Shown: piece by piece, positions 2,158-54,885 of the stretch
Layout of the letters: each line of letters opens with the position of its first letter
Numbering within the stretch: position 1 is the stretch's first letter
Source: Macrostomum lignano
Taxonomy: Eukaryota
Length of the DNA stretch: 64,000 nt
Assembly (NCBI GenBank): GCA_002269645.1
Contig: NIVC01002101.1
Span: 124,001-188,000, forward strand
Direction of reading: 5' to 3'
Notes under the pieces: generated by a model
Seen by the model: only the letters and a program-made list of their open reading frames with translations
What the model was told of the DNA's origin: nothing
The model's database searches: none
Position numbers and translations under genes: made by a program

Positions 2158-4039
2158 TTTGAGAAACAGAATGTCATCTAGGGTAGTGGTAATCACCCGT
2201 AGTACGGCTCGTCATCGCTTGCTAGGGGGATGAGAATCAGAACGTAGTGGAAATTGCAAATTTAGAAAGCCATAATCTGATACAGGAGCCAAAATTGATA
2301 AAGCAGGCAACCGAAAGCGCCCCCAGTGAATAGCGGCGAAAGGTCGATTCAACACGATTGTCTACACCGGTAGGCGTGCATGCAGCAGGAATGTGTTAAT
2401 TATCATAAGTTACAGTCTTTGCATTGGGCGCAGCCTGACGCCAGTTACCCCTGGCTTAAATTAACTGCCCCATGCAAATCTGGATCTGCCGGGGACCACG
2501 AGGCCCAAAATCATCTCCGGCCCCAGTTCTCGACCACCCAGCATCCTCATGCTGGACTCTCCATAACGGGATCGCGCTGCGAACCCAGCAAAATGGGATC
2601 TCGTTTTAATGGCATTTTTAAATTATAGCAAAACCAGCGGTTTTAGGCGGCTGGTTTATGATATTTTATATGTACAAGCGTACATGGACGAGGTAGGACA
2701 TTTAAATTCAGCAGAAAGAGAAAACGAATCCGCAGATTATCGTGCACGTACACCTACTAGTTAACTGACTATATGCATGTACGTAAAAATTGTACATTTT
2801 GTACGTTTTGAAAATTGTACGTTTATTCTCAAATGTGCGTTTTGAGAATTGAGGAAGAATTTTCCCACCAAGGTTGTTTGCCCGCGCGAGCTTTTCCCGC
2901 AAGGGGTTTTCCAGTCAGAATGTTAAGTCAAGTAGAAAGCAGACTACTCCAGTTTAACTTTTAAATCACCACGAACGCATCTACTTTCTGCCGTTGAACA
3001 AAATGACCCAATGACTATTTGACAAAAGGGCTATGAAATGTCCAGTCGACGTTCTATTTAGGTTCTTTCAAAAAACACCTGGGCATCATTTTGATAGCGC
3101 GCGTTTATAGCGTTTATAGCGTTGTGCTAGGTTCTTAATAGTTTTTTTTGATTGCCGTTTTTGGTTTGAAAAGTTACTTTTTTACCAAATTTTACTGCAT
3201 CTGTTTTAATGCTGCTTTTTCTATTGTTTTAGCTGGTACTTGTTTTACTTTGACCAAAATTCAAATATTATTGTTTGATACATTTTTGCGCCGGGCCCCT
3301 ATTTCTAAATATACGAATTTAAAGAGCCTTATCCATCGTATTTACTGGTTCATTCTCACACTTACTGCATAAGTTTATAAAAAAGAATAACGTTTTGTAT
3401 TTTATTAAAATTCTCTACATTGCTTTAAATAAACTAAACCATAGATGCGAAAGGAATAGCTCCATTATAGCCATAGACTTGACAGGCCTACTATAAAGTG
3501 CTATATATTTGTGCTTGAATAAAAATAGTTGTACCAGTATATTTGGAAGCCATTGAAATCATAGATTTAGGTTGGCTATATAGTTTTCATGCATTCAAAA
3601 AAATTAAAAGCTTTACACTTAATCTCTGCTAATTGACTAGGCTAAACTATCTGCCAAAACTGCCTGCCAATCTTCAGTTGGTTGGGCTTGATATGGAATC
3701 TAATAATGCAGGCAATCAAGGACAAAATCATTGTGACGATGAGCTAGTAAGTAATCTAATAATAATGACAATGGACAAATATATATTTATATATGTTTTT
3801 TAATATTTTTATTAATAAAGATCTTAAATAATGTTATATTATAGCGTTATAGGGCTAAATGCCAAAATACCAATGGCAATCTTACTATTTCATAGCCTAT
3901 TGTACTTTTCTAAAATCCTATTGAAATAGAATTACCAAAACCTACTGACACAGTAACATTATATAGAGGTACTTCAAAAGGCCATACAAAGATTCTTATA
4001 CAAAAGATTAAAAGAGTAATTTTTATTATTAGAAGCTAG

Positions 4040-4184
4040 TGGATTGTGCGCACCCTGGTGCACTTTAAGCGACATAGGCACACAACTGGCGAGAGGCATT
4101 ATTGCCCATTCCATCGACTCCCTTGAGTAGGCATATAAGTGTGCAGATACGTACACAGGCCCACACTCACATAGGAGTGTACAG
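4040..4184 (-). mobile_element. 3' half of tRNA-derived SINE (family A)
   Basis: Reverse complement aligns to 13010-13160 of the full-length copy. Confidence 0.9.
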
Positions 4185-4192
4185 CTTTATTT

Positions 4193-5770
<1,578 letters not shown>

Positions 5771-5778
5771 CTTTATTT

Positions 5779-5960
5779 TATAATTAGGCATGTACACTTC
5801 ACTGCACATTGGGGGGGGTTGGCTCTCAAGGCTGTTAATTGCACAAGCAGAGCCAAGCCAAGATTCTAATTTAGCCCCAAATTTATGATTGCACTTGGAA
5901 TTGAGCCTAGGTCACTGGCACACTAGAGCCTATGCTAGATTGCTGGGCTATGGCCTCCCT
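5779..5960 (-). mobile_element. 5' half (tRNA head) of SINE family A, heavily C>T mutated
   Basis: Reverse complement aligns to 12816-12990; it is the colinear continuation of the 4040-4184 piece. Confidence 0.9.
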
Positions 5961-7217
5961 TAAAAAAGTAAAGAGTAAAATTACTTTATATGCATATATA
6001 ACTAAGTAAATAGTAGGAATAACCTGGGTTTTTTGGACTGTATAAGGTTTTTTGGCCTCTTGAAAATCTTATTGGCAATTGAAGTTTTGGTATCAGAGGC
6101 CAATCTGGCAACTTTATTTTCCCTATGCCAATTGCCAATTAAAAAATGATTTTATAAGTGTGTTAAATATGCTATATAAATTAATCATATGATGGTATTA
6201 TTAGTTTGTTATTGTTTGCACTATAGAAACCATAGCACCATAGTAATCTTAGAGTTGAGAGAACTAATTTCTGCTATTTAAACTTAGCCTTGGAAATATC
6301 TTCAAGAATTTGTATAGTTGCCAATAAGTAGCTAAAAATAGTCATTAAAACTAGATTTTAGGGTGCTAGTAAATTTATCAACTGGTAACTTCCTCAGCAA
6401 AGTACAGTATGTGCAGCTATCTTAGTACACAGATAATACAGATTTATAAAAGCAATGAGCTAAGCCATGTCATTGTAATGCTAGTTTTTAGGCACAAGAC
6501 ATGACAATTGTTAATTGTGACAATGTCTACCTTACTATTGCCAGATAGGCAGATTGTCTATTGTTGCAGAATGTCTTTTTGGTAGATTGACTAGATAAGA
6601 GACAGCAGCACACTGCAGCACCCAGCAGTCTACCATGTACAACATGATCAAATATAAGATACAATGATGATACAATTAAAACAATGAAACTAAGAATCTT
6701 CCATTTCAATAAGTAGCTAAGGAACTGCAATTAATTGTCAGGATGTCATTGGCAATGGTAAAATCAATTTTAATTCTAATCAGTTTTAATAAATGTAATT
6801 TAATAAAAAAGAATACTTAATTAACTTTGTATGCACATATAAATTGAAGCCTTATTGCTTTTGCTTCTATTTCCATCTCTTGCTTAATACACTTTGTTAT
6901 ATTACATATTAGTTTACGCACTATGCAAACCATGATAAACTTGTCAACATAGTTAATGAATAAAAATATGACAAGTTACCTAGATCTAGATTTTGAGCAC
7001 TAAGGGCCAGCTGGCAACTAGATTTCCAACCTTAAAAAACCTAGGGAATATGATTGTCTTCTTAAAGCTAAGTGCCTTATCATCTAATTAGTAGTACTTC
7101 TATATTCTTTTTGGATAGAAATTTTTGACTTATCCTTGGTCCAATACAATTTTCAGTGGCTAGATTGACCAAGTTAGCTAGCCTAGCAGTCATATAAATA
7201 TACATATGCATTGGTGC

Positions 7218-7655
7218 AATGGAATTGAACACAGCAGGCAAGTAGCTAGTCACATACCAATCAAAGGTCACAGTGCGGCCTTGTTCAACTGGCACTGAAG
7301 CCATGATGCCTCTGGGCTAGAAGAAAATTGCAAACATGATTTTCCCAGCTGACCTCATCCACTTCACCTTTTGGGGAGGTAGGGCTTCTTTGAGTGACCA
7401 AAGCATTGACTGTGATTTAGTTGGCGGGTCATACTGATGGAACTAGGCTTCATCACCTGTGATGATGTTCTGGAAGTTTGCAGATACTCCATCTTTGAAC
7501 TGATCCTGGAAATTTCTGCAAAAATCAATTCTCTGCTGCTTCTGCTCAGGCAAGAGGATTTGTGGTACCCATTTGGCAGCTTTCTTGGTGACACCAAGAT
7601 CTTCATACAAGATCCTCCAAATCAATATGGCATCAATGCCCAGACTCTTCTCCAG
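7218..7655 (-). pseudogene. Mariner (Tc1/mariner) transposase fragment
   Basis: EKSLGIDAILIWRILYEDLGVTKKAAKWVPQILLPEQKQQRIDFC...NIITGDEA*FHQYDPPTKSQS...RSAGKIMFAIF*PRG...GRTVTFDWYVTSYLPAVF. It contains the WVP motif, the TGDE first catalytic Asp and YDP.TK.QS, with in-frame TAG stops. Confidence 0.9.
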
Positions 7656-8140
7656 GCTGATGGTATGCACCATTTCTATATACATGTCTAGCCAAGCTTC
7701 GTCAAACCTAGGCCACGTCTTCAGTACCTTTAAGATGTAGCCTTGCAGGGTGTGGCCACCTGTATAGTAGTTGGTTTGCCACCACATCACTTTGGTTCCT
7801 AGTACCAGGTTAGCTGCTAGGCACATGTGGCCCTGGTCTTTTTCTATTAAATGCTTGGTTGTGTCTCTGCCTGCATCATCAAGCATGCCAGGCGCAGCCT
7901 TGGTTATGACATCACCATCCTCAAGACTGGCCCATCCCAGAGCCACGCAGGAGTACGCAGCAGCAGTTACTAATCCTACCAGCCATGGCACATCAGTGTC
8001 CAGTGCAGCTGTATTAGTCCTCACCCAGTTTGCAGCCCACATGGCTGCCAAGTTGGTATGGGCCTAGGTCAGGTTGGCTAGCTGTGGAAAGCAAAGCTTC
8101 TTGGCAGTTGGAATAGCAGCATCTTGGCCCACAGGTATGG
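7656..8140 (-). pseudogene. Probable endogenous viral element: negative-strand RNA virus nucleoprotein-like fragment (qinvirus/phasmavirus-type motif)
   Basis: About 160 codons with one TAG, including LVLGTKVMWWQTNYYTGGHTLQGYILKVLKT...IEMVHTI. This resembles the TK.NWW..NHH.G...GY..KV...VH.IGHW motif I recall from these nucleoproteins; NYY is explicable as NHH by CAC/CAT>TAC/TAT. The family assignment is from memory and was not searched. Confidence 0.55.
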
Positions 8141-8390
8141 GATTGCACCTTGGGATTGTACACATAAAATCTCTACTACAAGAACACTACTGGTGGCCTC
8201 GGATGGACAAGATGGTAGAATCAAGTGTAGGAACATGCCAAGTCTGCAAGACATCAAAGCCACAGAACAGAAAGTTCCGCATATCATGGCCCAAGCCAGA
8301 TGGCCTATGGACCAGAGTCTATATGAACTTTGCCAGTCCAATTGACAGGCACTACCTACTGGTATTAGTGGATGCCTACTCTAGTTTGGC
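8141..8390 (+). pseudogene. Ty3/Gypsy integrase fragment (H2C2 zinc-binding plus start of rve)
   Basis: HLGIVHIKSLLQEHYWWPRMDKMVESSVGTCQVCKTSK...WPKPDGLWTRVYMNFASPIDRHYLLVLVDAYS. Confidence 0.9.
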
Positions 8391-11300
8391 TGCATTTTAT
8401 TTTCTATTAACCCTCCACCTTTTATTTGTTGGTTAAAGACACAACAATAACAAAATTTTATCATGTTAAAATGAGAGAAACCAATAATAAAATGCATTTT
8501 ACAAGTTGTATACATGAAACAGCAACAAAATGCTTGCCCCTACCATGCAGTAGCCAACAAAGGGGGAATCAGAAAGTATCTCTAGGCCATAGCCCTAAAA
8601 AGTCATACCTGGTCTAATGAGCCAGAATCAGTCAAAGCCTGTTAGTATATGCCATTCACCCTTGGTCTTGCCTACATAGTCCTTGAAACTTGGGTAGCAG
8701 TACAATGTATAGCAGCTCAGGGCAGCAGGCCTCTGAGCAGATGATGTGGCCAGGCAGTCAAAGTTGCTACCTATGCAGTAGGTCAGAAAGCCATATCAGG
8801 TATACCATTGCATAGAGTGCAGTGTTGATCTTGCTGACTGGGTTGCTGCCTCTCCAAAGGCATCTGTCAGGGTCTAGGTCTCAGTGTTATATAGCAAGAC
8901 AATCTGCCTGAAACAGCTTCACTCTGGCCTCTGAGCCCATTATCCAAGGCCTCAAAATGGAGCACAGAGCACATGAATATATATTACAAATAATTGTCAA
9001 ACAAGTTTAACTTAGTTTCAGTATTTAGGTAACCATGGCCCCTCTATTAATAGCCTTAGCTACAAACTATACTACTTTGTCTCTGTCAACTTTTGCCCAT
9101 AAACTATATCTCAAACATTTAACCTTATTAGCTACCACATTAGCATTGAGTGAGTTATGTACTTTTTGCTAATAATTTTCATCTTTTAATGGTAAAGCAA
9201 ACTAAGGATTGGCAAAATCTAGCTTGCAGGCCAAATGTAGCCTAAAGAGCTAAAAACTCAAAAATCTGTTTCTCAGATCCTTTTAAACATTATAATAGTA
9301 ATTCAGCATACTAAAAGTTAATGTCTTCTCTTGGCTCACTTATCTATATAATTTTTTCTCTTATCTCTTTCTTCTCTTTCTATGGGACAAAAAATATAGC
9401 ATAAATTAAAATTATTTGATTAAAATTGTAATTTTGGCAATTAAAAAATTCCAAATGTTATTCTTTTTTAGTACTTCCAATTGTAATAAACATAATTTTT
9501 CTAATTCAATTTTATTAGCTAAAGTCCAATTCCAAAGTGTAGTTAAAGTTTTCTTTTTAAAAACTGTAAATTCTAATAGATTCAACATAAATCTCACTAG
9601 ATAAAAAATCAATATAGTTAAACTTCTTATTAACTTGATAAGTTGGATTGCTATCAAATACCATTATCAGTTCAAAATAACCTGATTTTTTATTATTATA
9701 TATCTGAACATAAATATGGAATAACAATTTACACACATACAAAGCAATAATAAAAAGTATAAAATAGCAACGAAGACAAAGTACAGGATCATATAATACT
9801 TGGCAAATAGTTAAAAAAAAGAAAATAGTCAGAGAAAAATAACAATTTTGTCTTCTCTAAGAGTAGTTTGCATTTTGCAAAAAGAGGTCAAAGAGATGTA
9901 ATGGCATACTTTGAAAGCAGGTCACATCTGCAAGTAAAGGTCAGTAAGAAAATATTAACATATACAATTGTAAAAATACACTTTAATTTAAATAAACAAG
10001 ATAAAGCAAGCAAATGTCAAAGAGATGTAATGACATTCTTTGTGAGCAAGTTAAGTCTACAAGAAATGATAAAAATTAGACTGCTAACATTGGTAGTTTA
10101 AAAAAGTATGTTTAGACTAGTTAAGTTGTAAAACTTTGCATGTATAAGTTCCTAATTCTCATGATATTCTACTGTATACCAAAAGCATTTTAGAAAGCAT
10201 TTTATTACTTCCAATATATCTTTGTACTCAACTAGTGAAAACAACTTTTGCTTGGTAATTCCTATGCTTGATAGCAAGCAACCCTTGAGGGCTTGTTTAC
10301 CATAAACAATGGTGACAAATGTTAGAGCGAATGTCAGTTGTTGGGATCACTATAATTAATTGATTTGAAGTCAACTATTTGTCCAATGTGGTAGGTAAAC
10401 TCAGCTATATTCTCAATTTGAATCGAGTTTGTCACTTCTTGTTTTTTTTCAAAAGCTGCTACTAGTAGCCAATTTGTTTGCTTTTGTTCTCTAAGCAATT
10501 GCTTCATGACATCAGGCATGCTTGTATTGAAGTCAGCTGACTGAATATTGTAGACCTACAATATCTGAAAAGATTAGCAACCCTTTGAGTTTAAGTTGTA
10601 TTTGGCTGAGTATCTCAAAGAGCTTGGCAGCCTCTTAACAAATAAAAATGGTACTAGATGATGCAATTTTTAAAAGTCTCAGTAGCTAGTGGACCAATGT
10701 TAGAACTAGTGCATCTGAGCTTTTATCTGAGTTATCTGTTTAGATAGAATCTTTATGCCATCAAGGTTAATTCATATAACAGTGTCAGTATCTAGAATTT
10801 CTAGGTCCTCCAATGCAGTAGCAAGTAGTTTAGATGCACTTACAAGCTTGACCATAGGACCTTAGGCTAAAAATAGCCTTTTCACTTTCGTTTTTTCTCT
10901 ATTTTCACCTGTTGCCCTTTTTGTTATCTTTGCCTTTGTTTCTAGCAGAATAGATTGCAGTGCAGCAGCATTGTAAGAGAATACTGAAGAGTTGAGCACA
11001 GTTTCAAAACACCATAATAGAAAGAATTCATTGCACAATGGCTTAGTGTGAAAATCTGGTAACTGGTTTGTTGTGAAAAATTTCTAAATCCATTTGCTAT
11101 AAAATAAAATGTAAAAAATTCAACTTGTAGTTAGACATAGGGTCACTGCCTGGAGTCTATAGTGAGTTGTGGAACCATGTCTAAATACAAGAAAAATATT
11201 TTGATGCAACTAATACTAGCAACTAACTTGCAGCCAAATACAATGTCAATTGATCAGTTTTTACAAGTTTTCACAACAATAACAATGTGAAAACAGGGAC

Positions 11301-11522
11301 TTCTATAAGTTTTTCACTAGTTAAAACAAGTCAACAAAGTATAGACTTTGTTGCATTTTAAAATGCAAATCCTGATTGCAATAATTACAGAGAAATTTAT
11401 GTAATACGGATTGTAATTATGGTAATTAATACAAATCTGATACAATGTCATTGGTGATGTATCAGAATCGTATATTCTTATTTAAATTTATACCTAGATG
11501 GAGATGTTGTGGTATTCAAAAA

Positions 11523-14500
11523 ATGAACCAAATCTTCATTACACCACAATGCTCAACTCTGAACTCACAGGACGATCTCGAGAGCCTCCGGCTTGCCGCA
11601 CTAGCCAGCCTGCGTGGCAAAGTCAAACCGGCCGCACCTGCCGCTGCTCCAGTTGCCAAGCCGCCTGTCAGTAGCAAGCCTGCCATTGCTCAGCCTGAGC
11701 AGAAACTCAACAGTATCAAGGCTGCAACTGCTGCCCCTTCAACTGCATCGGCTACAGCTTCAGCTACAGCTTCTGGGCAGAGGTTCGATGCTCGAGCTGG
11801 TAGTTATCAGGTGAGAAATCAGAGAGTTCACACGTCTGACAATTAGAAAGTGCGACCATGTGCAAATGCGTGCCAGTGTACAGTATTGGTGCGTTTCTGT
11901 GTACTGAGCAACTCAAAATTCGCGATCTACCCCAACCCTAATTATTTTCCCTGGTTAAAACTACTGACAGTAGTGTAAAAGCATATTGTCGCGTGTCTAA
12001 TTGAGTCGAGTGCGAAGAAAAACGTAGAGAGCCAGATCATTCAACTGGGCTCTTTATAAGACACGTTTATTTACCCTTATGGACAAGGCTACTGGTTTAG
12101 GCTAGGCTACTGTTTAGGCTACTGGTTTGTTTGCTATGCGTAGGTTGCTCCACCAGGCTTCCTGATTTCCCTAATCCTAGTAGTTAGCGATCAAAGGAAC
12201 AACACAGGAAACCGAAAATAACAATTCCTTTTATTCCAAATATTAGTTAGTTAGTTAAGCAGTTTTAGCGGTGTTAGTTAGCATAGACTACCTTGTAGTG
12301 CACTGTCTTGGCATTGACTACCTTATCGGTATTCCGTGCCCTGCTCCTATCTCCTGTTCCTGTTGGTTCCTGTTTAATTGTCTTCAAAACTGAAACTAAC
12401 ACAGGCGCCCCACTAATCGATACATATAAAGAAACCCAAAATTCGCGATCTACCCCAGCCCTAATTATTTTCCCTGGTTAAAACTACTGAAAGTAGTGTA
12501 AAAGCATACTGTCCCGTGTATAATTCTAACGCTCAATTCTGCCCTACTACTACTACCCTTAGGACAAAAGAAAGGATGGTTGGCCAAGGCTAAGAAGCGT
12601 CCCGCAGTCACTTGTGTCGCCCCAAAGTTGTTTCAGACGCGTTGCAGATCACACAGGTCAAATAGGAAAGAAGTGTTTCTAAACGACAAGATGTCACGAG
12701 ATATCAACTTTTTTCAGCACAAAAATTGTTATTGCTATTCTACGTAGAATAAATATTATTGGTCTATGTACAGTTCGTGTACCTAAATATTATAAAAATG
12801 CATGGTAAAGCTCGAGGGGGGCCGTAGCCCAGCGGTAGCGCAGCTGCTCTGGTGTGCCAGCGACCCAGGCTCGATTCCAAGTGCAGTCACATTAATTTGG
12901 GGCTGAATTGGAATCTCGGCTTGGCTCTGCTCGTGCAATTAACGGCCTTGAGAGCCAACCCCCCCCCAAGGCGCAGTGAAGTGTACATGCCTAACGATAA
13001 TATAAAGTTAGGGCCGCTGTACACTCCTGTGTGAGTGTGTGCCTGCGTACGTATCCGCGCGCTTGTATGCCTGCTCAGGGGAGTCGGCGGAATGGGCAGT
13101 AATGCCTCTCGCCGGTTGTGTGCCTATGTCGCTTAAAGTGCGCCAGGGTGCACACAACCCCCCTGTTTCTTATAAAAATGGCAAAGCTCGACTGATTGGT
13201 TTTATGAATCCATTTTATCACCTTTGTTGAATTATACTGTTACAGATTCAGCTAAGAATGAACAAATAGATTCATAAAACCGATCACAACATAAAATCCT
13301 AATTTTAAAATGGCAAAACATATCAGAAAAGTGGATCTGCTTCCTGTCGAAAGCAATAACAATTTTAATATGGGGCTGGACCTTCTGTCACTGGCCTCAC
13401 GTCACAGCACCAGCTAACAAACTTTCTTATTTATTTATTCCCAGCACAACCGTCGGGCCAACCTGTTGGTGTTGACTCAGCGGCAGCACAGGCCGGGGGA
13501 TGCCAAACCTGCATCGGCTTCGGTGGTTCCGCCAGCTCCCACCACGGCCAGTGGAGCTCCAGTCACCCAGCAGCCGCAGAGACAGCAGCAGCAACAACAA
13601 CAGCCGCAGCAGCCCTTAGCAACTGCGACTCAGCAGCGACTCACAGGACACGGAAAATTTGATCGAATTCGAGACGATGTCGAAGAGGACGATGATGAAG
13701 ATGATGAGGATGCTGAGGATGCTGATAGCGAAGCTCAAAAGAGCAAAGCCGATAGTAAAATCGTCGCCCAAGCCTCGGCGTCGCTGTTGCTAGGCAACGG
13801 ATTCGAGGAGGCGAACCCGCCGCAGCAAAGATCTGGCGCTACGGCGCCGCCAGTGGAATCGGCGCCGTGCACGCTGGACACGGACGAGGAGGAATCGCTG
13901 CTCAGATCGTCGTCGCCTTCGGTGGCCTCCTCAGCCGCTGCGTCGGTTGCCGACGAGAAAGACGAGCAGCCGGTTCAAGAAGAAGCGGATGAGGAGGCAA
14001 AGCAATCCCAAGATGATAAGGCTGAAGCAAAGGAGGATGCTGTGGAGGACGACGAGGAATCCTCAGTAGAAATCTTCAACTCTGTGGACGAGCTCGTCCT
14101 GGACGATTGCACCGACCTGCTGTTCGACGAGCCGCCAGTTGACGCTGCACCCGATGACGCTGCTGCTGCTTCGTCCGCCTCATCATCAGGAGCCAAGCGG
14201 CAGCTGGCCAGGACAGTGTCGCAATCGTCATCGCCTTCAGATCGTCGTCAGTCGTCTGCTAGAAGAAGCCCGCCGCATCAGCGGAAGCAACAACAGCCGC
14301 AACAACAGAAGCAGCAACAACCTCAGCATCAGCAGCATCATCAAGTATTGCATCCGCCTCTGCATCCGCCTCAGCATCCGCCAATACAGCCTCATCAGCG
14401 TTCTATGCCGCCGCAGGCGATGCAGATCAATCAGTCGTTTCGGCCGCCTGTGTTTATCAACCAGGCTGGCTATCCTATGCAGCAGATGGCACCGCAGCAG

Positions 14501-15421
14501 CATCCTCAGCAGCATCCTCAACTGTATCAGCCTCCGCATCCGTCATTCGCTCCTGTTTCGGTCGGGGCTGGTGCCGGTTTCCCGAATCCGGCTGCCGCTT
14601 TGATGATGCCACACCATCAGCAGCTTCAGAACTATCATCATCATCTTCCTCAGCATCCTCAGCAGCAGCAGCCGCCACTGCCGCCGATGTCTTTGCCGTT
14701 GCAGTTGTCGTCAGCTTCAACGGCGCCGTCTTCCTCGGCTTCTGCTGCTGTTGCTGCTGTTGCTGTGTCTTCGGCGGCTTCGGTTCCGGCTGCTGCTTCA
14801 GCGGCGGCGGCAGGCAGTTCCGTGGGCGAGCCGCCCCGAATGTCGCGTTCCCGCTCGAGCTCGAGCTCGTCGGCCTCGATCTCTGCAGCCGACCGGCGCA
14901 AGAAGAAGCGCCGACGGCAGCCGCGCGAGCATCGGCGCAGCCGGAGCCGCAGTCGCGGTCGCTCCGGTCGGTCTCGACATCGTCGCGCCGTGTCGGCCGA
15001 CTCGGCAAATTCTGCCTCGTCGTCGGTCGCTTCGTCGTCTTCGCCGCAGCAGCAGCAGCGACGCAGTAAATTGGCGCCGACCTCAATGGTGTCGGTGGTG
15101 ACGGCCGGCAAGCGGACTGCGGCAGCCGCGGCATCGACAGCTGCTGCTGCGACGGCTCAGCAACCGACGTCTTCGTCTGAGCGCAAAGCCAAGAAGCAGC
15201 GCCGCCAGCATTCCAAGCAGAAGCGGCACAAGCATCGGCACCGGAAGCGTCGGCAGCAGCGCGAAGGCTCCGCCTCGGTAGTTTCGTCGCCGACTGGCGG
15301 AGTTGCCGCTGGCATCGGCGGCAGCGGCGGCGACTCCCCTGGCAGCAGTCGGTCGAACGAGGATCTGCGCAACTTCCTTATCAAACGACGGAATGACGCA
15401 ATCAGCCAGTTGGCGCTGTGA
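11523..15421 (+). CDS. Low-complexity basic/RS-rich putative nuclear protein; exons 11523(or 11571)-11810 and 13445-15421
   Basis: Phase-0 join CAG|GTGAGA (11811) to TTCCCAG|CAC (13445) keeps the frame: ...DDLESLRLAALASLR...GSYQ|HNRRANLLVLTQ... Acidic, poly-Q/P, RS and KR-rich tracts follow, ending EDLRNFLIKRRN...L*. The start is uncertain: ATG 11523, or an acceptor at 11570 with an unidentified upstream exon. Confidence 0.75.
11914..12525. repeat. Pair of ~88-bp direct repeats (11914-12002 and 12437-12525) in an intron
   Basis: CAAAATTCGCGATCTACCCC(A/G)...GTAGTGTAAAAGCATA...TAATT occurs twice with few mismatches. Confidence 0.85.
12816..13177 (+). mobile_element. Full-length tRNA-derived SINE (family A) with target-site duplication
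   Basis: A-box TAGCCCAGCGG and B-box GGCTCGATTCC; flanked by ATGG(T/C)AAAGCTCGA (12802-12815 and 13178-13191); homologous pieces at 4040, 5779 and 35342. Confidence 0.9.
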
Positions 15422-22400: not shown

Positions 22401-25400
22401 AAAGTGCACGGCAAAGATACTGGATTTATGTTTATGAGTTATTTTGGACCGGTTCAATACAGGTGTTATGGATCTGAGACAGGTGATTTGTCATCTGAGA
22501 CAGGTGATTTGTCATCTGAGACAGGTGATTTGTCATCTGAGACAGGTGATTAGGGATCTGAGACAGGTGATTAGAGATCTAAAAATGGTGATTAGAGATC
22601 TGAGATAGGTGATTAGGGATATGAGACAGGGGATTAGGGATCTGAGAGAGGTGATTAGAGACCTGAGACAGGTGATTATGGATCTGAGACAGGTGATTAG
22701 GGATCTGAGACAGGTGATTATGGATCTGAGACAGGTGATTAGGGATCTGAGACAGGTGTATGGATCTGAGACAGGTGATTATGGATCTGAGACAGGTGAT
22801 TATGGATCTGAGACAGGTGATTAGGGATCTGAGACAGGTGATTAGGGATCTGAGACAGGTGATTAGGGATCTGAGACAGGTGATTATGGATCTGAGACAG
22901 GTGATTAGGGATCTGAGACAGGTGATTAGGGATCTGAGACAGGTGATTATGGATCTGAGACAGGTGAATATGGATCTGAGACAGGTGATTATGGATCTGA
23001 GACAGGTGATTATGGATCTGAGACAGGTGATTATGGATCTGAGACAGGTGATTATGGATCTGAGACAGGTGATTAGGGATCTGAGACAGGTGATTATGGA
23101 TCTGAGACAGGTGATTAGGGATCTGAGACAGGTGATTAGGGATCTGAGACAGGTGATTAGGGATCTGAGACAGGTGATTATGGATCTGAGACAGGTGATT
23201 AGGGATCTGAGACAGGTGATTATGGATCTGAGACAGGTGATTAGGGATCTGAGACAGGTGATTAGGGATCTGAGACAGGTGATTAGGGATCTGAGACAGG
23301 TGATTAGAGATCTAAAAATGGTGATTAGAGATCTGAGACAGGGGATTAGGGATCTGAGAGAGGTGATTATGGATCTGAGATAGGTGATTAGGGATATGAG
23401 ACAGGTGATTAGGGATCTGAGACAGGTGATTAGGGATCTGAGACAGGTGATTAGGGATCTGAGACAGGTGATTATGGATCTGAGACAGGTGATTAGGGAT
23501 CTGAGACAGGTGATTAGGGATCTGAGACAGGTGATTAGGGATCTGAGACAGGTGATTATGGATCTGAGACAGGTGATTAGGGATCTGAGACAGGTGATTA
23601 GAGATCTAAAAATGGTGATTAGAGATCTGAGATAGGTGATTAGGGATATGAGACAGGGGATTAGGGATCTGAGAGAGGTGATTATGGATCTGAGATAGGT
23701 GATTAGGGATATGAGACAGGTGATTAGAGATCTGAGACAGGTGATTAGGGATCTGAGACAGGTGATTAGGGATCTGAGACAGGTGATTATGGATCTGAGA
23801 CAGGTGGTTATGGATCTGAGACAGGTGATTAGGGATCTGAGACAGGTGTATGGATCTGAGACAGGTGATTATGGATCTGAGACAGGTGATTAGGGATCTG
23901 AGACAGGTGATTAGGGATCTGAGACAGGTGATTAGGGATCTGAGACAGGTGATTAGGGATCTGAGACAGGTGATTATGGATCTGAGACAGGTGATTAGGG
24001 ATCTGAGACAGGTGATTAGGGATCTGAGACAGGTGATTATGGATCTGAGACAGGTGATTAGGGATCTGAGACAGGTGATTAGAGATTTAAGACAGGTTTA
24101 GAAGCAGGTTGTCTGATTTGGAATATTCAACTAAGACTCGGAGGCATGGATCTTATGTAGGATTGCATAAAAAAATATCTAAACATAACGGCCACTCCAG
24201 CCTCACCATCATCCGTGAGAATCTCCATCTCTGTCCTGTTAATTCTGAGCATCTCCTTGAAGGTTAGCACGCACATTGATACCATTATCGGAGCCTGCAA
24301 AGTGCGGTGCTGCGAATTGCAATTTCAAACCAAAAATTTGAACTTGAAATTTCTTAAATTTCTCACCTGAAAAGCGGCGATCACAAAGAAGGGGTATCGA
24401 ACTCGGGACAGCACTGATTCCAGCTCGTCGTCCACTGTGTACACTGTGGCCGAGGACACCTCGCGAGCTGCCGGAGGTGCAGCAGCCGCCGCGGCCTCCG
24501 CCTCAGGCAGGGTGCAGTTCAGCCACTCGTGCGGCGCCGGGTGAGACAGGAAAGCGCCGATGATGAGGGGCGACACGAAGGCGCCCAGGCTCTGGCAGAA
24601 GAACATGGCCTGCAGGAATGGCCCGGCTTGGCTTCTGTAGAGCTGCAGCAGCTGCGCGTTGCAGAAGAACTCCAGGCAGCCCTCCAGCAGCCCCATGGCG
24701 CTGAAGGCGAAGGCCAGGCCGGTGAGGCTGCGACACAGCGGCACCAGCAGGAAGCAGCAGGGCATCAGGGTGGCCACCATCAGCAGCAGCAGGTGGACTC
24801 CCAGCCTGCCGGGTGCATCAGCGAGACAGGAATCTATTGTTCAGGCTCTTTAAATAGTCAGCTGAGTAGCCTGGGTCCTTTATGACGGAGCAGCTCTGCT
24901 GGTGTAAACGCGTCTAGCCTGACTCTGGTTGATTCCGCTAAATTTATCCCTCCAAAGCACAGACAGTGTACATGCCTGGACGATTAGAGAGTCACAAGAG
25001 AGAGTACAGGTGTTAATGCACTTGTAATTTGCTCAGGAGACGGCTCACCTTCATGCAACTCTCATAAGTTATAAGATAAGTATGCATACACACGCTCACA
25101 CAGGGTGTGGAAAACTCAAGTAGAAGAGGAGACAACTACGGTTTCTTGGAAAACTTTTAAGATCAGGCAGGATTTACCGAAAATAGTGCATTCCGGAGAT
25201 GAAGGTTTTCATTTTTTGAGCACAAACATTGTAATTGCCTTCAGTAGGAGGCAGGTCCAGTGTTCTCAGCAACATTGAAAAGTCGCCATCACAGTGGATT
25301 CCGTCTGTGGTCGCCACATTTGAGAGTGCAGGTAAAGTCTCTCAATCTTTGCGAGTGACGCAACTAAGCTAGTTGGGGAATGAAGTGGGGTGGGCTTTGT

Positions 25401-35190: not shown

Positions 35191-35341
35191 CAAACAGTAA
35201 AGGAAAAAAACACGATGGATTTTTCTTTCTAACATGACTTAATATGACTATTGATGCACAATATACTTTCCGCGGATGCACCCGCGGACAGCAAGCTGCT
35301 TGCTGTCTGCTGGGGGATGCTTGCTAAAGAGTTACCTAATT

Positions 35342-35421
35342 AATGTGGCTGCACTTGGAATCGAGCCTGGGTCGCGGCACACAAGAGCAGCTGCGCTACC
35401 GCTGGGCTACGGCCCCCCCCC
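35342..35421 (-). mobile_element. SINE family A head only (CpGs intact)
   Basis: Reverse complement aligns to 12816-12895. Confidence 0.85.
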
Positions 35422-39924: not shown

Positions 39925-42705
39925 GCAATGAAGCTTCAGGGCAGGCGGCAGCGGAGATTAAGGAATAGGCAGCGGAGCTTCAGGGCAGGCGGCGGAGCTT
40001 CAGGGCAGGCAATGAAGCTTCAGGGCAGGCAGCGGAGATTAAGGAATAGGCAGCGGAGCTTCAGGGCAGGCAATGAAGCTTCAGGGCAGGTGGCAGCGGA
40101 GATTTAGGAATAGGCAGCGGAGCTTCAGGGCAGGCGGCGGAGCTTCAGGGCAGGCAATGAAGCTTCAGGGCAGGCAGCGGAGATTAAGGAATAGGCAGCG
40201 GAGCTTCAGGGCAGGCGGTGGAGCTTCAGGGCAGGCGGCGAAGATTAAGGAATAGACAGTGGAGCTTTAAAAAAGGCGGCGGAGCTTCAGGGCAGGCGGC
40301 GGAGATTAAGGAATAGGCAGCGGAGCTTCAAGGCAGGCGGCGGAGCTTCAGGCCAGGCAGCGGAGCTTCAGGGCAGGCAGCGGAGCTTCAGGGCAGGCGG
40401 CGGAGATTAAGGAATAGGCAGCGGAGCTTCAAGGCAGGCGGCGGAGCTTCAGGGCAGGCAGCGGAGCTTCAGGGCAGGCGGCGGAGCTTTAGGGCAGACA
40501 TAGGAGCTTCAGGGCAGGCGGCGGAGCGTTAGGGCAGGTGACGTAGCTTCAGGGCAGGCGGCGGAGATTAAGGAATAGGCAGCGGAGCTTCAGGGCAGGC
40601 GGCGGAGATGAGCTTCAGGGCAGGCGGCGGAGCGTTAGGGCAGGTGACGTAGCTTTAGGGCAGGCGGCGGAGATTAAGGAATAGGCAGCGGAGCTTCAGG
40701 GCAGGCGGCGGAGATTAAGGAATAGGCAGCGGAGCTTCAGGGCAGGCGGCGGAGCTTCAGGGCAGACATAGGAGCTTCAGGGCAGCCAGCTGAGCTTTAG
40801 GGCAGGCGGCGGAGATTAGAGAATAGGCAGCGGAGTTTCAGGGCAGGCGACGGAGCTTCAGGGCAGGCGGCGGAGCTTTAAGGCAGACATAGGAGCTTCA
40901 GGGCAGGCGGCGGAGCGTTAGGGCAGGTGACGTAGCTTCAGGGCAGGCGGCGGAGATTAAGGAATAGGCAGCGGAGCTTCAGGGCAAGCGGCGGAGATTA
41001 AGGAATAGGCAGCGGAGCTTCAGGGCAGGCGACGAAGCTTCAGGGCAGGCGGCGGAGCTTCAGGGCAGGCAATGGAGCTTCAGGGCAGGCGGCGGAGATT
41101 AAGAAATAGGCAGCGGAGCTTTAGGGCAGGCGGCGGATTTTCAGGGCAGGCGACGTAGCTTCAGGGCAGGCGGCGGAGATTAAGGAATAGGCAGCTGAGC
41201 TTCAGGGCAGGCGGCGGAGATTAAGGAATAGGCAGCTGAGCTTCAGGGCAGGCGGCGGAGATTAAGGAATAGGCAGCGGAGCTTCAAGGCAGGCGGCGGA
41301 GCTTCAGGGCAGGCAATGGAGCTTCAGGGCAGGCAGCGGAGATTAAGGAATAGGCAGCGGAGCTTCAGGGCAGGCGGCGGAGCTTCAGGGCAGACATAGG
41401 AGCTTCAGGGCAGGCAGCGGAGCTTTAGGGCAGGTGACGTAGCTTCAGGGCAGGCGGCGGAGATTAAGGAATAGGCAGCGGAGCTTCAGGGCAGGCGACG
41501 AAGCTTCAGGGCAGGCGGCGGAGCTTCAGGGCAGGCAATGAAGCTTCAGGGCAGGCAGCGGAGATTAAGGAATAGGCAGCGGAGCTTCAGGGCAGGCGGC
41601 GGAGCTTCAGGGCAGGCAATGGAGCTTCAGGGCAGGCGGCGGAGATTAAGTAATAGGCAGCGGAGCTTCAGGGCAGGCGGCGGAGCTTCAGGGCAGGCGG
41701 CGAAGATTAAGGAAGAGGCAGCGGAGCTTCAGGGCAGGCGGCGGAGATTAAGGAATAGGCAGCGGAGCTTCAAGGCAGGCGGCGGAGCTTCAGGACAGGC
41801 AGCGGAGCTTCAGGGCAGGCGGCGGAGCTTTAGGGCAGACATAGGAGCTTCAGGGCAGGCGGCGGAGCGTTAGGGCAGGTGACGTAGCTTCAGGGCAGGC
41901 GGCGGGGATTAAGGAATAGGCAGCGGAGCTTCAGGGCAGGCGGCAGAGATTAAGGAATAGGCAGCGGAGCTTCAGGGCAGGCGGCGGAGATTAAGGAATA
42001 GGCAGCGGAGCTTCAGGGCAGGCAATGAAGCTTCAGGGCAGGCAGCGGAGATTAAGGAATAGGCAGCGGAGCTTCAGGGCAGGCGGCGGAGCTTCAGGGC
42101 AGGCGGCGAAGATTAAGGAATAGACAGTGGAGCTTTAAAAAAGGCGGCGGAGCTTCAGGGCAGGCGGCGGAGCTTCAGGGCAGGCGGCGGAGATTAAGGA
42201 ATAGGCAGCGGAGCTTCAAGGCAGGCGGCGGAGCTTCAGGCCAGGCAGCGGAGCTTCAGGGCAGGCAGCGGAGCTTCAGGGCAGGCGGCGGAGATTAAGG
42301 AATAGGCAGCGGAGCTTCAAGGCAGGCGGCGGAGCTTCAGGGCAGGCAGCGGAGCTTCAGGGCAGGCGGCGGAGCTTTAGGGCAGACATAGGAGCTTCAG
42401 GGCAGGCGGCGGAGCGTTAGGGCAGGTGACGTAGCTTCAGGGCAGGCGGCGGAGATTAAGGAATAGGCAGCGGAGCTTCAGGGCAGGCGGCGGAGATTAA
42501 GGAATAGGCAGCGGAGCTTCAGGGCAGGCGACGAAGCTTCAGGGCAGGCGGCGGAGCTTCAGGGCAGGCAATGAAGCTTCAGGGCAGGCAGCGGAGATTA
42601 AGGAATAGGCAGCGGAGCTTCAGGGCAGGCGGCGGAGCTTCAGGGCAGGCGGCGAAGATTAAGGAATAGACAGTGGAGCTTTAAAAAAGGCGGCGGAGCT
42701 TCATG
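39925..42705. repeat. GC-rich complex satellite built from 20/21-bp subunits (GGAGCTTCAGGGCAGGCGGC and GGAGATTAAGGAATAGGCAGC) with higher-order blocks
   Basis: The diagnostic variant AATAGACAGTGGAGCTTTAAAAAAGG recurs at about 40250, 42120 and 42665. Confidence 0.95.
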
Positions 42706-44269: not shown

Positions 44270-45622
44270 AGAGATTTTGTGCAGTTGGGCCACGCCTCTG
44301 CAGCCGACGCCGATCCCCGCGGGCGCCTGGCTGTCGATCGGCGCCGATTTCGTGGGACCCAACAACAACAACATGCTGCTGGTGTGCGTGGACCGCTACT
44401 CAAGGTTTCCGGAGGTGCAGCTCATGCAGACGACGACGGCCGAGGCATTGATTCCCCGCCTGCGAGAGATGTTCGCCCGCTTCGGGATGCCACAGGAGCT
44501 CGTGACAGATAATGGACCACCTTTCTCGTCCAAGGAGTTCGGCCGGTTCCTGGCGAGCTACGGGATCAAGCACCGCCTCATCACGCCCTACTACCCAGCG
44601 GCCAACGGCATGACAGAGCGACTGAACCGCTCCATCAACAAAGTCGTGCGAGCAGCCATCGAGGAGCGGCGGGACTGGAGGGCCGCTCTGGACGAGTGGC
44701 TGCTGGCCTACAGAAACACGCCGCACACGGCCACCGGGCGCGCACCAGCCGAGCTGCTGATGGGCCGGCGGCCAAACGACATCATCCCCGCCGCCCGGCC
44801 GTCCCAGCGAGTCCGCATCAACGAGCAGCGGCTGAGAGAAGCCGACGCTGGCGCCAAGGCGGCGATGAAGCAGCACGCGGACGCAAAAAGGCGACCACGG
44901 CGGCACGACGTCCAGGTCGGCGACTCGGTGCTACGACGGCGGGTCGGTGCCAGCAAGACGCAGACGCCATTCGAGAGCGGTGCCTGGACAGTCCAGCGGG
45001 TGGCCGGCAACTCGCTGCTGCTACGCCGGGACGGCACGACCTGCTGGCGGCACTGCACGGCGGTCAAAGTCGTCAGCCCCGACTTGGCCGACGCCGGCGC
45101 CCAAACGCAGACCGCTGCACCGAGAGCTTCGGGCGAGGCGGCCCGAGATCCACCCGCCTCCCCCGTGGCGCTGCGCCCGCACCCCCGCGCTGCTCAGGCG
45201 GGCGTGAAAATCTACAAGGACTGAATTTGGAATCCTGCAATGACTGAAATTAACTGACTTTCTTTTCCGTAATATGCGGACTGAAGTTTTTTTTACGTTT
45301 TTGCTGCATTCAATTCAAATATTTTATTTCCTCAATATTTTAATCTCCATTTTCAATGCGCATCATCGGTGAATCTTTCGAACTTTGTATTTTCGAGTTA
45401 CGTTTAAATCGATTTTCTTCTCTCTCAGTCTCTATTCGAAAGGGGAGAGATGTAGTGTGCGTACGCACAGTATGGTACGCCCGGGCAGTCTGATTGGCTG
45501 CGGAGTGGGGTGGATGCCGCCACCCCAATTCTAACTCCATAATATATAGACGCGTGCCCAGTGCGGGAGATTTGTAAGAGTTTGGCTACACAGCAAACAC
45601 GGTCTCTGACTCAGTTACTACA
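44270..45622 (+). mobile_element. 5'-truncated Ty3/Gypsy LTR retrotransposon: integrase, PPT and putative 3' LTR
   Basis: Open ORF 44277-45224 with DFVGP...VDRYSRFP...TDNGPPF...TPYYPAANGMTER (DDE). PPT AAAGGGGAGAGA ends at 45450; candidate LTR TGTAGT(45451)...ACTACA(45622). Confidence 0.9.
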
Positions 45623-50467: not shown

Positions 50468-51198
50468 CGTTGGAAAAGTTATGCACCTGCAGAGGCACAA
50501 AAGGTGAGCGAGGTGCACAAAAGAGGCACTTTGGTGGCCTATTTCGTGTGTGTTTTCGTGTGTGTGCGAGAAGACCCTTGTGAAGAAGATCATGTGAAGT
50601 TAATTCAATCATGTGAAGTTAATTTCGTGGAAATGATCTAAACTATGGCGGCTGCTGCAGTAATCAGTTTTGATATGAGTCAGTTGGATTTTCTTACACT
50701 GTTAACTGAGTTATACATGTGTGTCTCATCGCTTTGTTCTTATATTAGCATATATGTGCAATAGCAGTCATTGCAGTATTTTATTGAATTATATGCTTGC
50801 TGAAACTACTGAATGGCAGGCATATAACCGTTCCTGCAGCAGCGAATGCAATGACACACGCGGTGGGCAGGCTCCAACTAAATGGGATCTAAACAGGTGT
50901 CGGGGACTCGAGAACTCGACGGAAGAAGTGCAGCGAACCCCCCCCCCCCAACATGCACAAAGAGGCACCCCGGCTGCACGTGGGAACCCCTGGCCTGGAC
51001 CGACACAGTCAAAATGGACTGTATTTATACAGTGGCAGATAAAACAGCGCACGAATGTGCTGGGGTACATGTACGTGACGTCACTGAGCTGCGTGTAATG
51101 TAGTGTTACACATGAATACTAGAACTTATTAATAAAAGGAATATTGTCTGGCCTTAAACTGCTTAATCCAAATGAAAAGAAATGCAGTCCAACTAAAC

Positions 51199-54100
51199 TG
51201 AGGATCTGGGAGGCTGACTATCCTACCAAGTGAGGATCTGGGAGGCTGACTATCCTACCAAGTGAGGATCTGGGAGGCTGACTGCCCTACCAACTAAGGA
51301 TCTGGGAGGCTGACTATCCTACCAACTGAGGATCTGGGAGGCTGACTATCCTACCAACTGAGGATCTGGGAGGCTGACTGCCCTACCAACTAAGGATCTG
51401 GGAGGCTGACTATCCTACCAACTGAGGATCTGGGAGGCTGACTATCCTACCAAGTGAGGATCTGGGAGGCTGACTGCCCTACCAACTAAGGATCTGGGAG
51501 GCTGACTGCCCTACCAACTGAGGATCTGGGAGGCTGACTATCCTACCAACTGAGGATCTGGGAGGCTGACTGCCCCACCAAGTGAGGATCTGGGAGGCTG
51601 ACTATCCTACCAAGTGAGGATCTGGGAGGCTGACTGCCCTACCAACTAAGGATCTGGGAGGCTGACTATCCTACCAAGTGAGGATCTGGGAGGCTGACTG
51701 CCCTACCAACTGAGGATCTGGGAGGCTGACTATCCTACCAAGTGAGGATCTGGGAGGCTGACTGCCCTACCAACTGAGGATCTGTGAGGATGACTACCCT
51801 ACCAAGTGAGGATCTGGGAGGCTGACTGCCCTACCAAGTGAGGATCTGGGAGGCTGACTGCCCTACCAAGTGAGGATCTGGGAGGCTGACTGCCCTACCA
51901 ACTGAGGATCTGGGAGGCTGACTATCCTACCAAGTGAGGATCTGGGAGGCTGACTGCCCTACCAACTAAGGATCTGGGAGGCTGACTATCCTACCAAGTG
52001 AGGATCTGGGAGGCTGACTGCCCTACCAACTAAGGATCTGGGAGGCTGACTATCCTACCAAGTGAGGATCTGGGAGGCTGACTGCCCTACCAACTGAGGA
52101 TCTGTGAGGATGACTACCCTACCAAGTGAGGATCTGGGAGGCTGACTGCCCTACCAAGTGAGGATCTGGGAGGCTGACTGCCCTACCAACTGAGGATCTG
52201 GGAGGCTGACTGCCCTACCAACTGAAGATCTGGGAGGCTGACTGCCCTACCAAGTGAGGATCTGGGAGGCTGACTGCCCTACCAACTGAGGATCTGGGAG
52301 GCTGACTATCCTAACAAGTGAGGATCTGGGAGGCTGACTGCCCTACCAACTAAGGATCTGAGAGGCTGACTGCCCTACCAACTGAGGATCTGGGAGGCTG
52401 ACTATCCTACCAAGTGAGGATCTGGGAGGCTGACTGCCCTACCAACTAAGGATCTGGGAGGCTGACTATCCTACCAAGTGAGGATCTGGGAGGCTGACTG
52501 CCCTACCAACTGAGGATCTGGGAGGCTGACTGCCCTACCAATTGAGGATCTGGGAGGCTGACTGCCCTACCAACTAAGGATCTGGGAGGCTGACTATCCT
52601 ACCAAGTGAGGATCTGGGAGGCTGACTGCCCTACCAACTGAGGATCTGTGAGGATGACTACCCTACCAAGTGAGGATCTGGGAGGCTGACTGCCCTACCA
52701 AGTGAGGATCTGGGAGGCTGACTGCCCTACCAACTGAGGATCTGGGAGGCTGACTGCCCTACCAACTGAAGATCTGGGAGGCTGACTGCCCTACCAAGTG
52801 AGGATCTGGGAGGCTGACTGCCCTACCAACTGAGGATCTGGGAGGCTGACTATCCTAACAAGTGAGGATCTGGGAGGCTGACTGCCCTACCAACTAAGGA
52901 TCTGAGAGGCTGACTGCCCTACCAACTGAGGATCTGGGAGGCTGACTATCCTACCAAGTGAGGATCTGGGAGGCTGACTGCCCTACCAACTAAGGATCTG
53001 GGAGGCTGACTATCCTACCAAGTGAGGATCTGGGAGGCTGACTGCCCTACCAACTGAGGATCTGGGAGGCTGACTGCCCTACCAACTGAGGATCTGGGAG
53101 GCTGACTGCCCTACCAACTAAGGATCTGGGAGGCTGACTATCCTACCAAGTGAGGATCTGGGAGGCTGACTGCCCTACCAATTGAGGATCTGGGAGGCTG
53201 ACTATCCTACCAACTGAGGATCTGGGAGGCTGACTGCCCTACCAACTGAGGATCTGGGAGGCTGACTGCCCTACCAACTAAGGATCTGGGAGGCTGACTA
53301 TCCTACCAAGTGAGGATCTGGGAGGCTGACTGCCCTACCAATTGAGGATCTGGGAGGCTGACTGCCCTACCAACTGAGGATCTGGGAGGCTGACTGCCCT
53401 ACCAACTGAGGATCTGGGAGGCTGACTGCCCTACCAACTGAGGATCTGGGAGGCTGACTGCCCTACCAACTGAGGATCTGGGAGGCCGTCACAGAAACTA
53501 AGGATCTGGGAGGCTGACTGCCCTACCAACTGAGGATCTGGGAGGCTGACTATCCTAACAAGTGAGGATCTGGGAGGCTGACTGCCCTACCAACTAAGGA
53601 TCTGAGAGGCTGACTGCCCTACCAACTGAGGATCTGGGAGGCTGACTATCCTACCAAGTGAGGATCTGGGAGGCTGACTGCCCTACCAACTAAGGATCTG
53701 GGAGGCTGACTATCCTACCAAGTGAGGATCTGGGAGGCTGACTGCCCTACCAACTGAGGATCTGGGAGGCTGACTGCCCTACCAATTGAGGATCTGGGAG
53801 GCTGACTGCCCTACCAACTAAGGATCTGGGAGGCTGACTATCCTACCAAGTGAGGATCTGGGAGGCTGACTGCCCTACCAACTGAGGATCTGTGAGGATG
53901 ACTACCCTACCAAGTGAGGATCTGGGAGGCTGACTGCCCTACCAACTGAGGATCTGGGAGGCTGACTGCCCTACCAACTGAGGATCTGGGAGGCTGACTG
54001 CCCTACAAACTGAGGATCTGGGAGGCTGACTGCCCTACCAAGTGAGGATCTGGGAGGCTGACTGCCCTACCAACTGAGGATCTGGGAGGCTGACTATCCT

Positions 54101-54885
54101 AACAAGTGAGGATCTGGGAGGCTGACTGCCCTACCAACTAAGGATCTGAGAGGCTGACTGCCCTACCAACTGAGGATCTGGGAGGCTGACTATCCTACCA
54201 AGTGAGGATCTGGGAGGCTGACTGCCCTACCAACTAAGGATCTGGGAGGCTGACTATCCTACCAAGTGAGGATCTGGGAGGCTGACTGCCCTACCAACTG
54301 AGGATCTGGGAGGCTGACTGCCCTACCAACTGAGGATCTGGGAGGCTGACTGCCCTACCAACTGAGGATCTGGGAGGCTGACTGCCCTACCAACTGAGGA
54401 TCTGGGAGGCTGACTGCCCTACCAACTAAGGATCTGGGAGGCTGACTATCCTACCAAGTGAGGATCTGGGAGGCTGACTGCCCTACCAATTGAGGATCTG
54501 GGAGGCTGACTATCCTACCAACTGAGGATCTGGGAGGCTGACTGCCCTACCAACTGAGGATCTGGGAGGCTGACTGCCCTACCAACTAAGGATCTGGGAG
54601 GCTGACTATCCTACCAAGTGAGGATCTGGGAGGCTGACTGCCCTACCAATTGAGGATCTGGGAGGCTGACTGCCCTACCAACTGAGGATCTGGGAGGCTG
54701 ACTGCCCTACCAACTGAGGATCTGGGAGGCTGACTGCCCTACCAACTGAGGATCTGGGAGGCTGACTGCCCTACCAACTGAGGATCTGGGAGGCCGTCAC
54801 AGAAACTAAGGATCTGGGAGGCTGACTGCCCTACCAAGTGAGGATCTGGGAGGCCGTCACAGAAACTAAGGATCTGGGAGGCTGG
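51199..54885. repeat. 32-bp satellite, ~115 copies (TGAGGATCTGGGAGGCTGACT(GC/AT)CCTACCAA(C/G))
   Basis: Period of 32 checked at 51199/51231; recurring variant units indicate higher-order structure. Confidence 0.98.

Follow-up and report, generated by a model that had tools for sequence, protein, structure and literature searches.

Nucleoprotein-derived elements and the Qinviridae

Elements derived from the nucleoprotein (N) genes of negative-strand RNA viruses are well known in animal genomes, e.g. the bornavirus-like N sequences of mammals and the chuvirus or rhabdovirus N sequences of arthropods. The Qinviridae are a family known almost only from metatranscriptomes. The ICTV profile gives crustaceans, insects, gastropods and nematodes as associated hosts, with no flatworms in the list, and describes virion and replication as unknown (PMC10721934); a 2024 study states that trypanosomatids are the only confirmed hosts (PMC11108086). 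Elements of the qinvirus clade have been reported in arthropods (PMC6540820; see also PMC6955108), one of them being EVE7, an RdRp element derived from a qinvirus in the ant Camponotus floridanus (PMC6540820). The literature searched describes neither a qinvirus-like element nor a qinvirus-like virus from Macrostomum or from another flatworm.

The sequence described here is a 474-base segment of the genome of Macrostomum lignano, a free-living flatworm. It is part of record NIVC01002101.1 (assembly GCA_002269645.1), of which a stretch of 64,000 nucleotides, termed the window below, was analysed (record coordinate = window coordinate + 124000). Record and window are identical over 16,880 bases, and the record carries the gene of an M. 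lignano protein, BOX15_Mlig017888g1, that an ORF of the window matches without a difference. The segment is very probably a dead non-retroviral endogenous viral element, i.e. a fragment of the N gene of a qinvirus-like virus (order Muvirales) that became fixed in the germ line of M. lignano.

How does this locus compare with the described systems? With the N protein of the Qinviridae (genus Yingvirus, YP_009337853.1), it shares homology of the N-terminal lobe, a core that is in register and an identity of 19-31%, typical of the family. It differs in being DNA within an animal genome rather than an RNA segment of 1.6-1.9 kb, in representing profile positions 21-172 of 432 only, in carrying a stop and substitutions at invariant positions, and in having no close member. 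Like other negative-strand N elements, it is a decayed N piece of a virus that lacks a DNA stage, and it lies beside retroelement sequence; here, however, the source is qinvirus-like and the host a free-living flatworm, and neither the hallmarks of retroposition nor an intact ORF are present. EVE7 comes from the same virus clade and is also found in an invertebrate genome, but it represents the polymerase (L) gene in an insect, whereas the M. lignano fragment represents N in a platyhelminth. The element thus belongs to a known class, the N-derived elements; its host phylum is new, and it stems from a rarely endogenized family.

Members of the same protein family are also found inside two other long DNA contigs. 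One of these (L001; ENA ERZ25071359, contig ctg37724, 433 kb) has a tandem array of qinvirus-like N genes at 2194-14325, in which at least four N-like copies share one strand and are spaced by about 3.7 kb; one copy is intact, with an ORF of 420 codons (P0028). The other (L019; JAAUXU010013756.1, 64.5 kb) has at 5788-7131 an open piece of 448 codons that matches N profile positions 1-338. These copies are long open frames, in tandem in the first contig, whereas the window has a single short fragment.

Homology to qinvirus nucleoproteins

Homology of the 474-base stretch to qinvirus N is shown by two kinds of search. The first was a single-sequence search, performed with full HMMER and a 132-residue query against 1.84 billion (1.84e9) representative proteins. 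It yielded 14 matches, eight of them to N-type proteins that align in a single stretch and six to repeat proteins. The N-type proteins have E-values from 9e-7 to 7e-4, with one match each of 36-45 bits that spans nearly the whole query and a composition bias of 0-2 bits. The six repeat proteins were dropped, as their scores are summed from short matches and their composition bias is high. The eight retained proteins have 360-590 aa, can be aligned with one another over their full length and have in common the core quoted in the first-pass annotation of the window. This core coincides with invariant columns of the family alignment; other invariant motifs are situated well outside the part that the window covers.

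The second search used a 432-position profile that was built from the eight proteins, with the window left out, and run against all six-frame pieces of the window. It detected this stretch with an E-value of 1e-26 (91.2 bits for the stop-free part) and gave no other match in the 64 kb. When the in-frame stop is marked X, the alignment to the profile is collinear, reaches back to profile position 21 (positions 21-172 in all) and scores 102.6 bits. Presumed decay mutations were left as they stand, and the unaltered sequence sufficed for the searches. Pfam and PDB sequence searches and a word-indexed protein search with the fragment returned nothing, as did a PDB search with the family profile and an Rfam search over the window; tblastn of the fragment against phage records gave noise only.

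What ties this protein family to the qinviruses? One of the eight proteins (P0012) is the N protein of Shahe qinvirus-like virus 1, YP_009337853.1, with the UniRef name 'Nucleocapsid protein'. It was found at E 6.8e-5 in the 1.84e9 proteins, with one 37.7-bit stretch that spans query residues 20-131. The source contigs of most of the other family proteins are 1.4-2.2 kb in length. Relatives are encoded by six IMG/VR viral contigs of 1.6-1.9 kb, and one of these, which at 1883 nt has the size of an S segment, carries an ORF identical to the Shahe protein. The contig sizes agree with the ICTV profile, where the qinvirid S segment measures 1.6-1.9 kb and encodes N (PMC10721934).

Comparison with viral nucleoproteins by profile and structure, which the first-pass annotation had proposed, gave qinvirus N proteins as well. 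The AlphaFold model of a family member, P0004 (pLDDT 82.7, pTM 0.80), matches seven qinvirus N models in BFVD, with E-values of 2e-23 to 8e-12 and TM scores of 0.65-0.81; a yue-like virus protein comes next at E 4e-4, followed weakly by N proteins of the rhabdovirus type. In the PDB, the top eight matches of P0004 are mononegavirus N proteins (lyssavirus, rabies, RSV), aligned over the full length. Their E-values of 0.014-0.24, none of which reaches 0.001, and TM scores of 0.31-0.37 make the likeness to the two-lobed N fold of mononegaviruses suggestive only. The model of the fragment itself (pLDDT 81) has a single weak match in BFVD (E 0.033, TM 0.54), and this falls in the same qinvirus cluster. 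It should be added that the N role of the qinvirus S-segment protein has itself been inferred from structure. The first-pass annotation had spoken of nucleoproteins of the qinvirus or phasmavirus type; with the Shahe protein among the eight relatives and the seven structural matches of P0004, the former attribution is supported. Neither a phasmavirus nor another bunyaviral protein appeared in the sequence or structure searches, and the latter is not supported.

In the columns covered, the fragment is 19-31% identical to the family members, for which the median among themselves is 27%. A neighbour-joining tree places it within the family but near none of the members. Both findings point to a distinct lineage at family-level divergence.

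The family identity is also backed by the setting of another relative, P0014, of 360 aa, which is found on two 5.5-kb contigs (L003 and L004; ENA ERZ27241733 and JGI 3300010395). It is encoded there downstream of two separate ORFs that match Mononeg_RNA_pol, all on the same strand. Either both genes were integrated and the copy is broken, or the genome arrangement is an unusual one for a family described as bisegmented.

State of the fragment and its neighbours

Features of the locus are listed in Table 1. The first-pass annotation had placed the viral segment at 7656-8140, which the profile alignment corrects by only a few bases. The fragment amounts to ~35% of the protein, with the N-terminal lobe only, and is truncated at both ends. 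It has one in-frame stop and no frameshifts, and a complete ORF of the family size, about 360-590 aa, is absent. The rest of the N gene was found neither beyond the mariner fragment nor elsewhere in the 64-kb window when the profile was run against the six-frame pieces. With so small a part of the profile present and no other match in the window, the locus constitutes a gene fragment and not an N gene. There is no second DNA copy within the 64-kb window; a single short copy is all that is seen there.

Table 1. Coordinates of features in the 64-kb Macrostomum lignano window
Feature	Position	Strand	Basis or remarks
CpG-depleted block, with the whole patch inside	5500..11000	.	CpG observed/expected 0-0.26, excess of TG+CA
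Mariner-type transposase fragment, 5'-truncated	7248..7655	minus	Translation; Pfam PF01359 below cut-off
Chimeric ORF, 202 codons	7443..8051	minus	Codons 1-131 N-derived, remainder mariner-derived
Qinvirus-like nucleoprotein (N) gene fragment	7659..8132	minus	Profile of eight family proteins, excluding the window
LTR (Gypsy-type) retrotransposon integrase fragment, 5'-truncated	8137..8433	plus	PF17921 E 9e-12, PF09337 E 2e-7
ORF	57732-58406		100% identical to M. lignano protein BOX15_Mlig017888g1

The conserved core was examined at those columns of the family alignment in which K, W, N, H, H, G and Y are invariant. The fragment covers eight family-invariant positions; the core is in register, and six of the eight positions are kept. 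The two that are substituted fit decay after integration. Three deviations from the family core that had been pointed out at first reading (HH>YY, a TAG, and ATC AGC for ATC GGC) are present as described, and the peptide quoted with them is found in the minus-strand translation when the frame of the chimeric ORF is followed slightly further upstream.

The 3' end of the N fragment is joined to an internal point of the mariner sequence, in the same orientation and reading frame. The ORF at this junction had been called a chimera, and rightly so: the minus-strand frame passes from N-derived to mariner-type sequence at about 7656. The further claim, that its C-terminal part is mariner, holds to the extent that the sequence resembles a mariner-type transposase; the match to PF01359 (Transposase_1), at about 7248-7421, remains below the cut-off (E 0.03, 14.6 bits vs 24), and a helix-turn-helix region and a GDE motif are recognised by eye only. 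The mariner fragment lacks the N-terminus, shows no terminal inverted repeat at the junction with N and has two further in-frame stops. The product of the chimeric ORF corresponds neither to a gene on record nor to a protein that has been annotated or called; exact look-ups of this ORF and one neighbouring ORF in public assemblies were empty.

At its 5' end, the N fragment abuts an internal point of the Gypsy-type integrase sequence, head to head, the N match ending four bases short of the start of the integrase match on the opposite strand. The integrase fragment consists of the H2C2 zinc-binding domain, from profile position 17 (window position 8137), and the start of the catalytic core; the zinc-binding domain is encoded within plus-strand 8074-8433. 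Pfam searches found no reverse transcriptase, RNase H or other further domain in any frame of 6401-9700. A reverse transcriptase or RNase H left of the patch, on the integrase strand, would have shown that the chimera was inserted into a Gypsy copy, but neither was found. Together, the three fragments make up an island of some 1.2-1.7 kb that has a GC content of 45-52% and is surrounded by AT-rich sequence. An apparent continuation of the integrase core near 8530-8900 (plus strand) was seen by eye only, with no Pfam support.

CpG depletion

The first-pass annotation had regarded the changes in the viral core as part of a local C>T/G>A bias, a suggestion that finds its support at the level of the whole depleted block. 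The ratio of observed to expected CpG is 0.16 in 7656-8140 and stays at the low values of Table 1 throughout the block, against 0.8-1.0 in most of the window. A repeat of ~360 bp offers an internal comparison, as it is present in inverted copies, one at 4023-4185 and 5771-5960 and the other at 12815-13178. The part of the left copy that lies in the block has no CpG, and its partner outside the block has 10; at these 10 sites the left copy has TG, CA, AA or CT, mostly TG or CA, and where the copies differ the changes are predominantly C>T and G>A. The CpG loss in this repeat pair shows that depletion of the ~5.5-kb block happened in place.

Both DNMT1 and DNMT3 are retained in M. lignano, where 5mC is present at a low level (PMC11292947, PMC10658182), and this system offers a cause for the CpG loss. 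The block represents a localized in situ CpG decay, though only low-level 5mC has been reported for the flatworm.

The repeat has some features of its own. Its inverted copies bracket 6.9 kb that include the fossil, and the left copy is split by a 1.6-kb insertion in which 5248-5444 is an (AG)98 microsatellite. One more copy, incomplete, is found at 35335-35418.

A probable endogenous viral element and its alternatives

Several features of endogenous elements come together at this locus: a source virus without a DNA stage, contiguity with host DNA, one stop, ends cut by transposon sequence and CpG decay. The position of the patch within a CpG-stripped block, where the loss took place in situ, argues for a dead non-retroviral endogenous viral element. 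The proposal made at first reading, that the segment is a fossil of an RNA virus lineage, is supported by a truncated and decayed qinvirus-like N piece within a host contig.

Might the N-mariner chimera have its origin in a different organism, from which a composite mobile element was passed horizontally to Macrostomum? If so, the fossil would be uninformative on flatworm viruses. Mariner elements are well known for horizontal transfer, and a fragment of this type continues the reading frame of the N fragment in the same orientation. However, the mariner piece has neither its 5' end nor an inverted repeat at the junction, and hence the chimera in its present form does not constitute a mobile unit. 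In addition, the CpG decay in situ affects the patch as it does the surrounding sequence, which indicates long residence at the site and speaks against this route. Transfer from another organism is therefore considered quite unlikely.

Another thought is that the N-transposase ORF was domesticated and is an expressed host gene, e.g. an antiviral decoy. The frame is indeed open for 202 codons across the junction, and its N-derived part has no frameshift, but what is left amounts to roughly one third of N plus an internal part of a transposase, and the same frame has a stop just before the ORF and two more just after it. Other residues occupy two of the eight invariant positions, the CpG decay is as strong as in the flanks and, as mentioned, annotated and called proteins include no match. 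Domestication is thus highly improbable, and the N-mariner locus most likely has no protein function today, considering that it retains ~35% of N, with stops, cut ends and changes at invariant positions.

An explanation by exogenous viral cDNA or by a chimeric assembly, with no integration, is hardly credible. Viral reads are common in sequencing libraries, and the transcriptome data of M. lignano have yielded a nyamivirus (PMC12282299); the stretch, however, is found 7.6 kb into the 64-kb window of a 204-kb contig, transposon fragments are joined to it within a few bases on both sides, and it displays truncation, a stop and the local CpG decay that it shares with its surroundings.

The prospect that the similarity is due to chance or to a non-viral protein was tested and rejected, and its probability is close to nil: although the two best E-values of the large search belong to bacterial and repeat proteins, P0001 (7e-9) and P0002 (1e-8), these scores add up 5-13 repeated short matches, none above 12.6 bits, and have a bias of 19-36 bits, whereas each N protein aligns once, along nearly all of the query, with almost no bias, and the family profile has an E-value of 1e-26.

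A related observation is that the N core at 7740-7810 (minus strand) resembles a repeat of ~40 residues in the long bacterial surface-type proteins P0001, P0003, P0005 and P0010, so closely that such proteins head the list of a single-sequence search. As each such repeat scores no higher than 12.6 bits, the resemblance is taken as chance.

Possible origin and fate

How might a fragment of an RNA virus gene have entered the flatworm chromosome as an endogenous viral element? Viral N mRNA, or a copy of the S segment, may have been present in a germ-line cell, where it would have been reverse-transcribed by an enzyme of a host retroelement and then integrated. Participation of a host retroelement is a reasonable inference from what is established about such elements. 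On the minus strand, reading from the 3' end towards the 5' end, the mariner fragment is followed by internal N sequence and then by nearly the 5' end of N. First-strand synthesis that began on a mariner-containing transcript, with a template switch into the N mRNA, could have produced this order. Alternatively, a nested insertion and a subsequent deletion might have occurred, which would fit the order of the fragments equally well.

The neighbouring sequences do not provide direct evidence for reverse transcription, since one of them, the integrase fragment, has the opposite orientation and the other, mariner, belongs to the DNA transposons. Neither a poly-A tail nor a target-site duplication was found at either end of the N fragment, where other fragments abut within a few bases; as both ends are cut, the absence of these hallmarks of retroposition is uninformative. 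Following integration, the locus would have been silenced, probably by the 5mC system that is kept in the species, and would afterwards have drifted as a pseudogene.

Could the fossil have a role at the RNA level? It might serve as a working template in a silenced transposon island that resembles a piRNA-type small-RNA cluster, and so take part in sequence-specific defence against a qinvirus-like virus that still circulates in flatworms. This is an unlikely scenario, but if true, virus-derived immune memory would have its first description from a platyhelminth, and the fossil would identify an animal host for a family whose only confirmed hosts are trypanosomatids (PMC11108086).

Host range

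Where only sequences are at hand, few kinds of evidence for the past presence of viral RNA in the cells of a host lineage are stronger than integration into the germ line. The M. lignano element therefore argues that qinvirus-like viruses infected flatworms, and such infection would add Platyhelminthes to the qinvirus host range. The locus could also date a branch of the family, provided that the site is common to Macrostomum species. The value of the finding is in the host range and in this possible dating.

Other features of the window

The window has a second retrotransposon fragment, an integrase-core ORF at 44277-45224 (plus strand). It is open over 315 codons, matches Pfam rve at E 1e-14 and has a CpG observed/expected ratio of about 1.1, i.e. 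it shows no CpG decay; there is no long pol ORF upstream. Minisatellite arrays crowd the region 15747-63819, with periods of 12-61 bases and up to 134 copies, e.g. at 22459-24097, 39932-42654 and 51196-54854. The largest array is 3.7 kb long with a period of 32, and many of the long ORFs in the ORF list are translated minisatellite arrays. An open frame of 651 codons at 13466-15421 (plus strand) is rich in Gln, Ser, Ala and Arg-Ser repeats, has a GC content of 58% and is without a match in Pfam; situated 5 kb from the fossil, it may represent a host gene exon.
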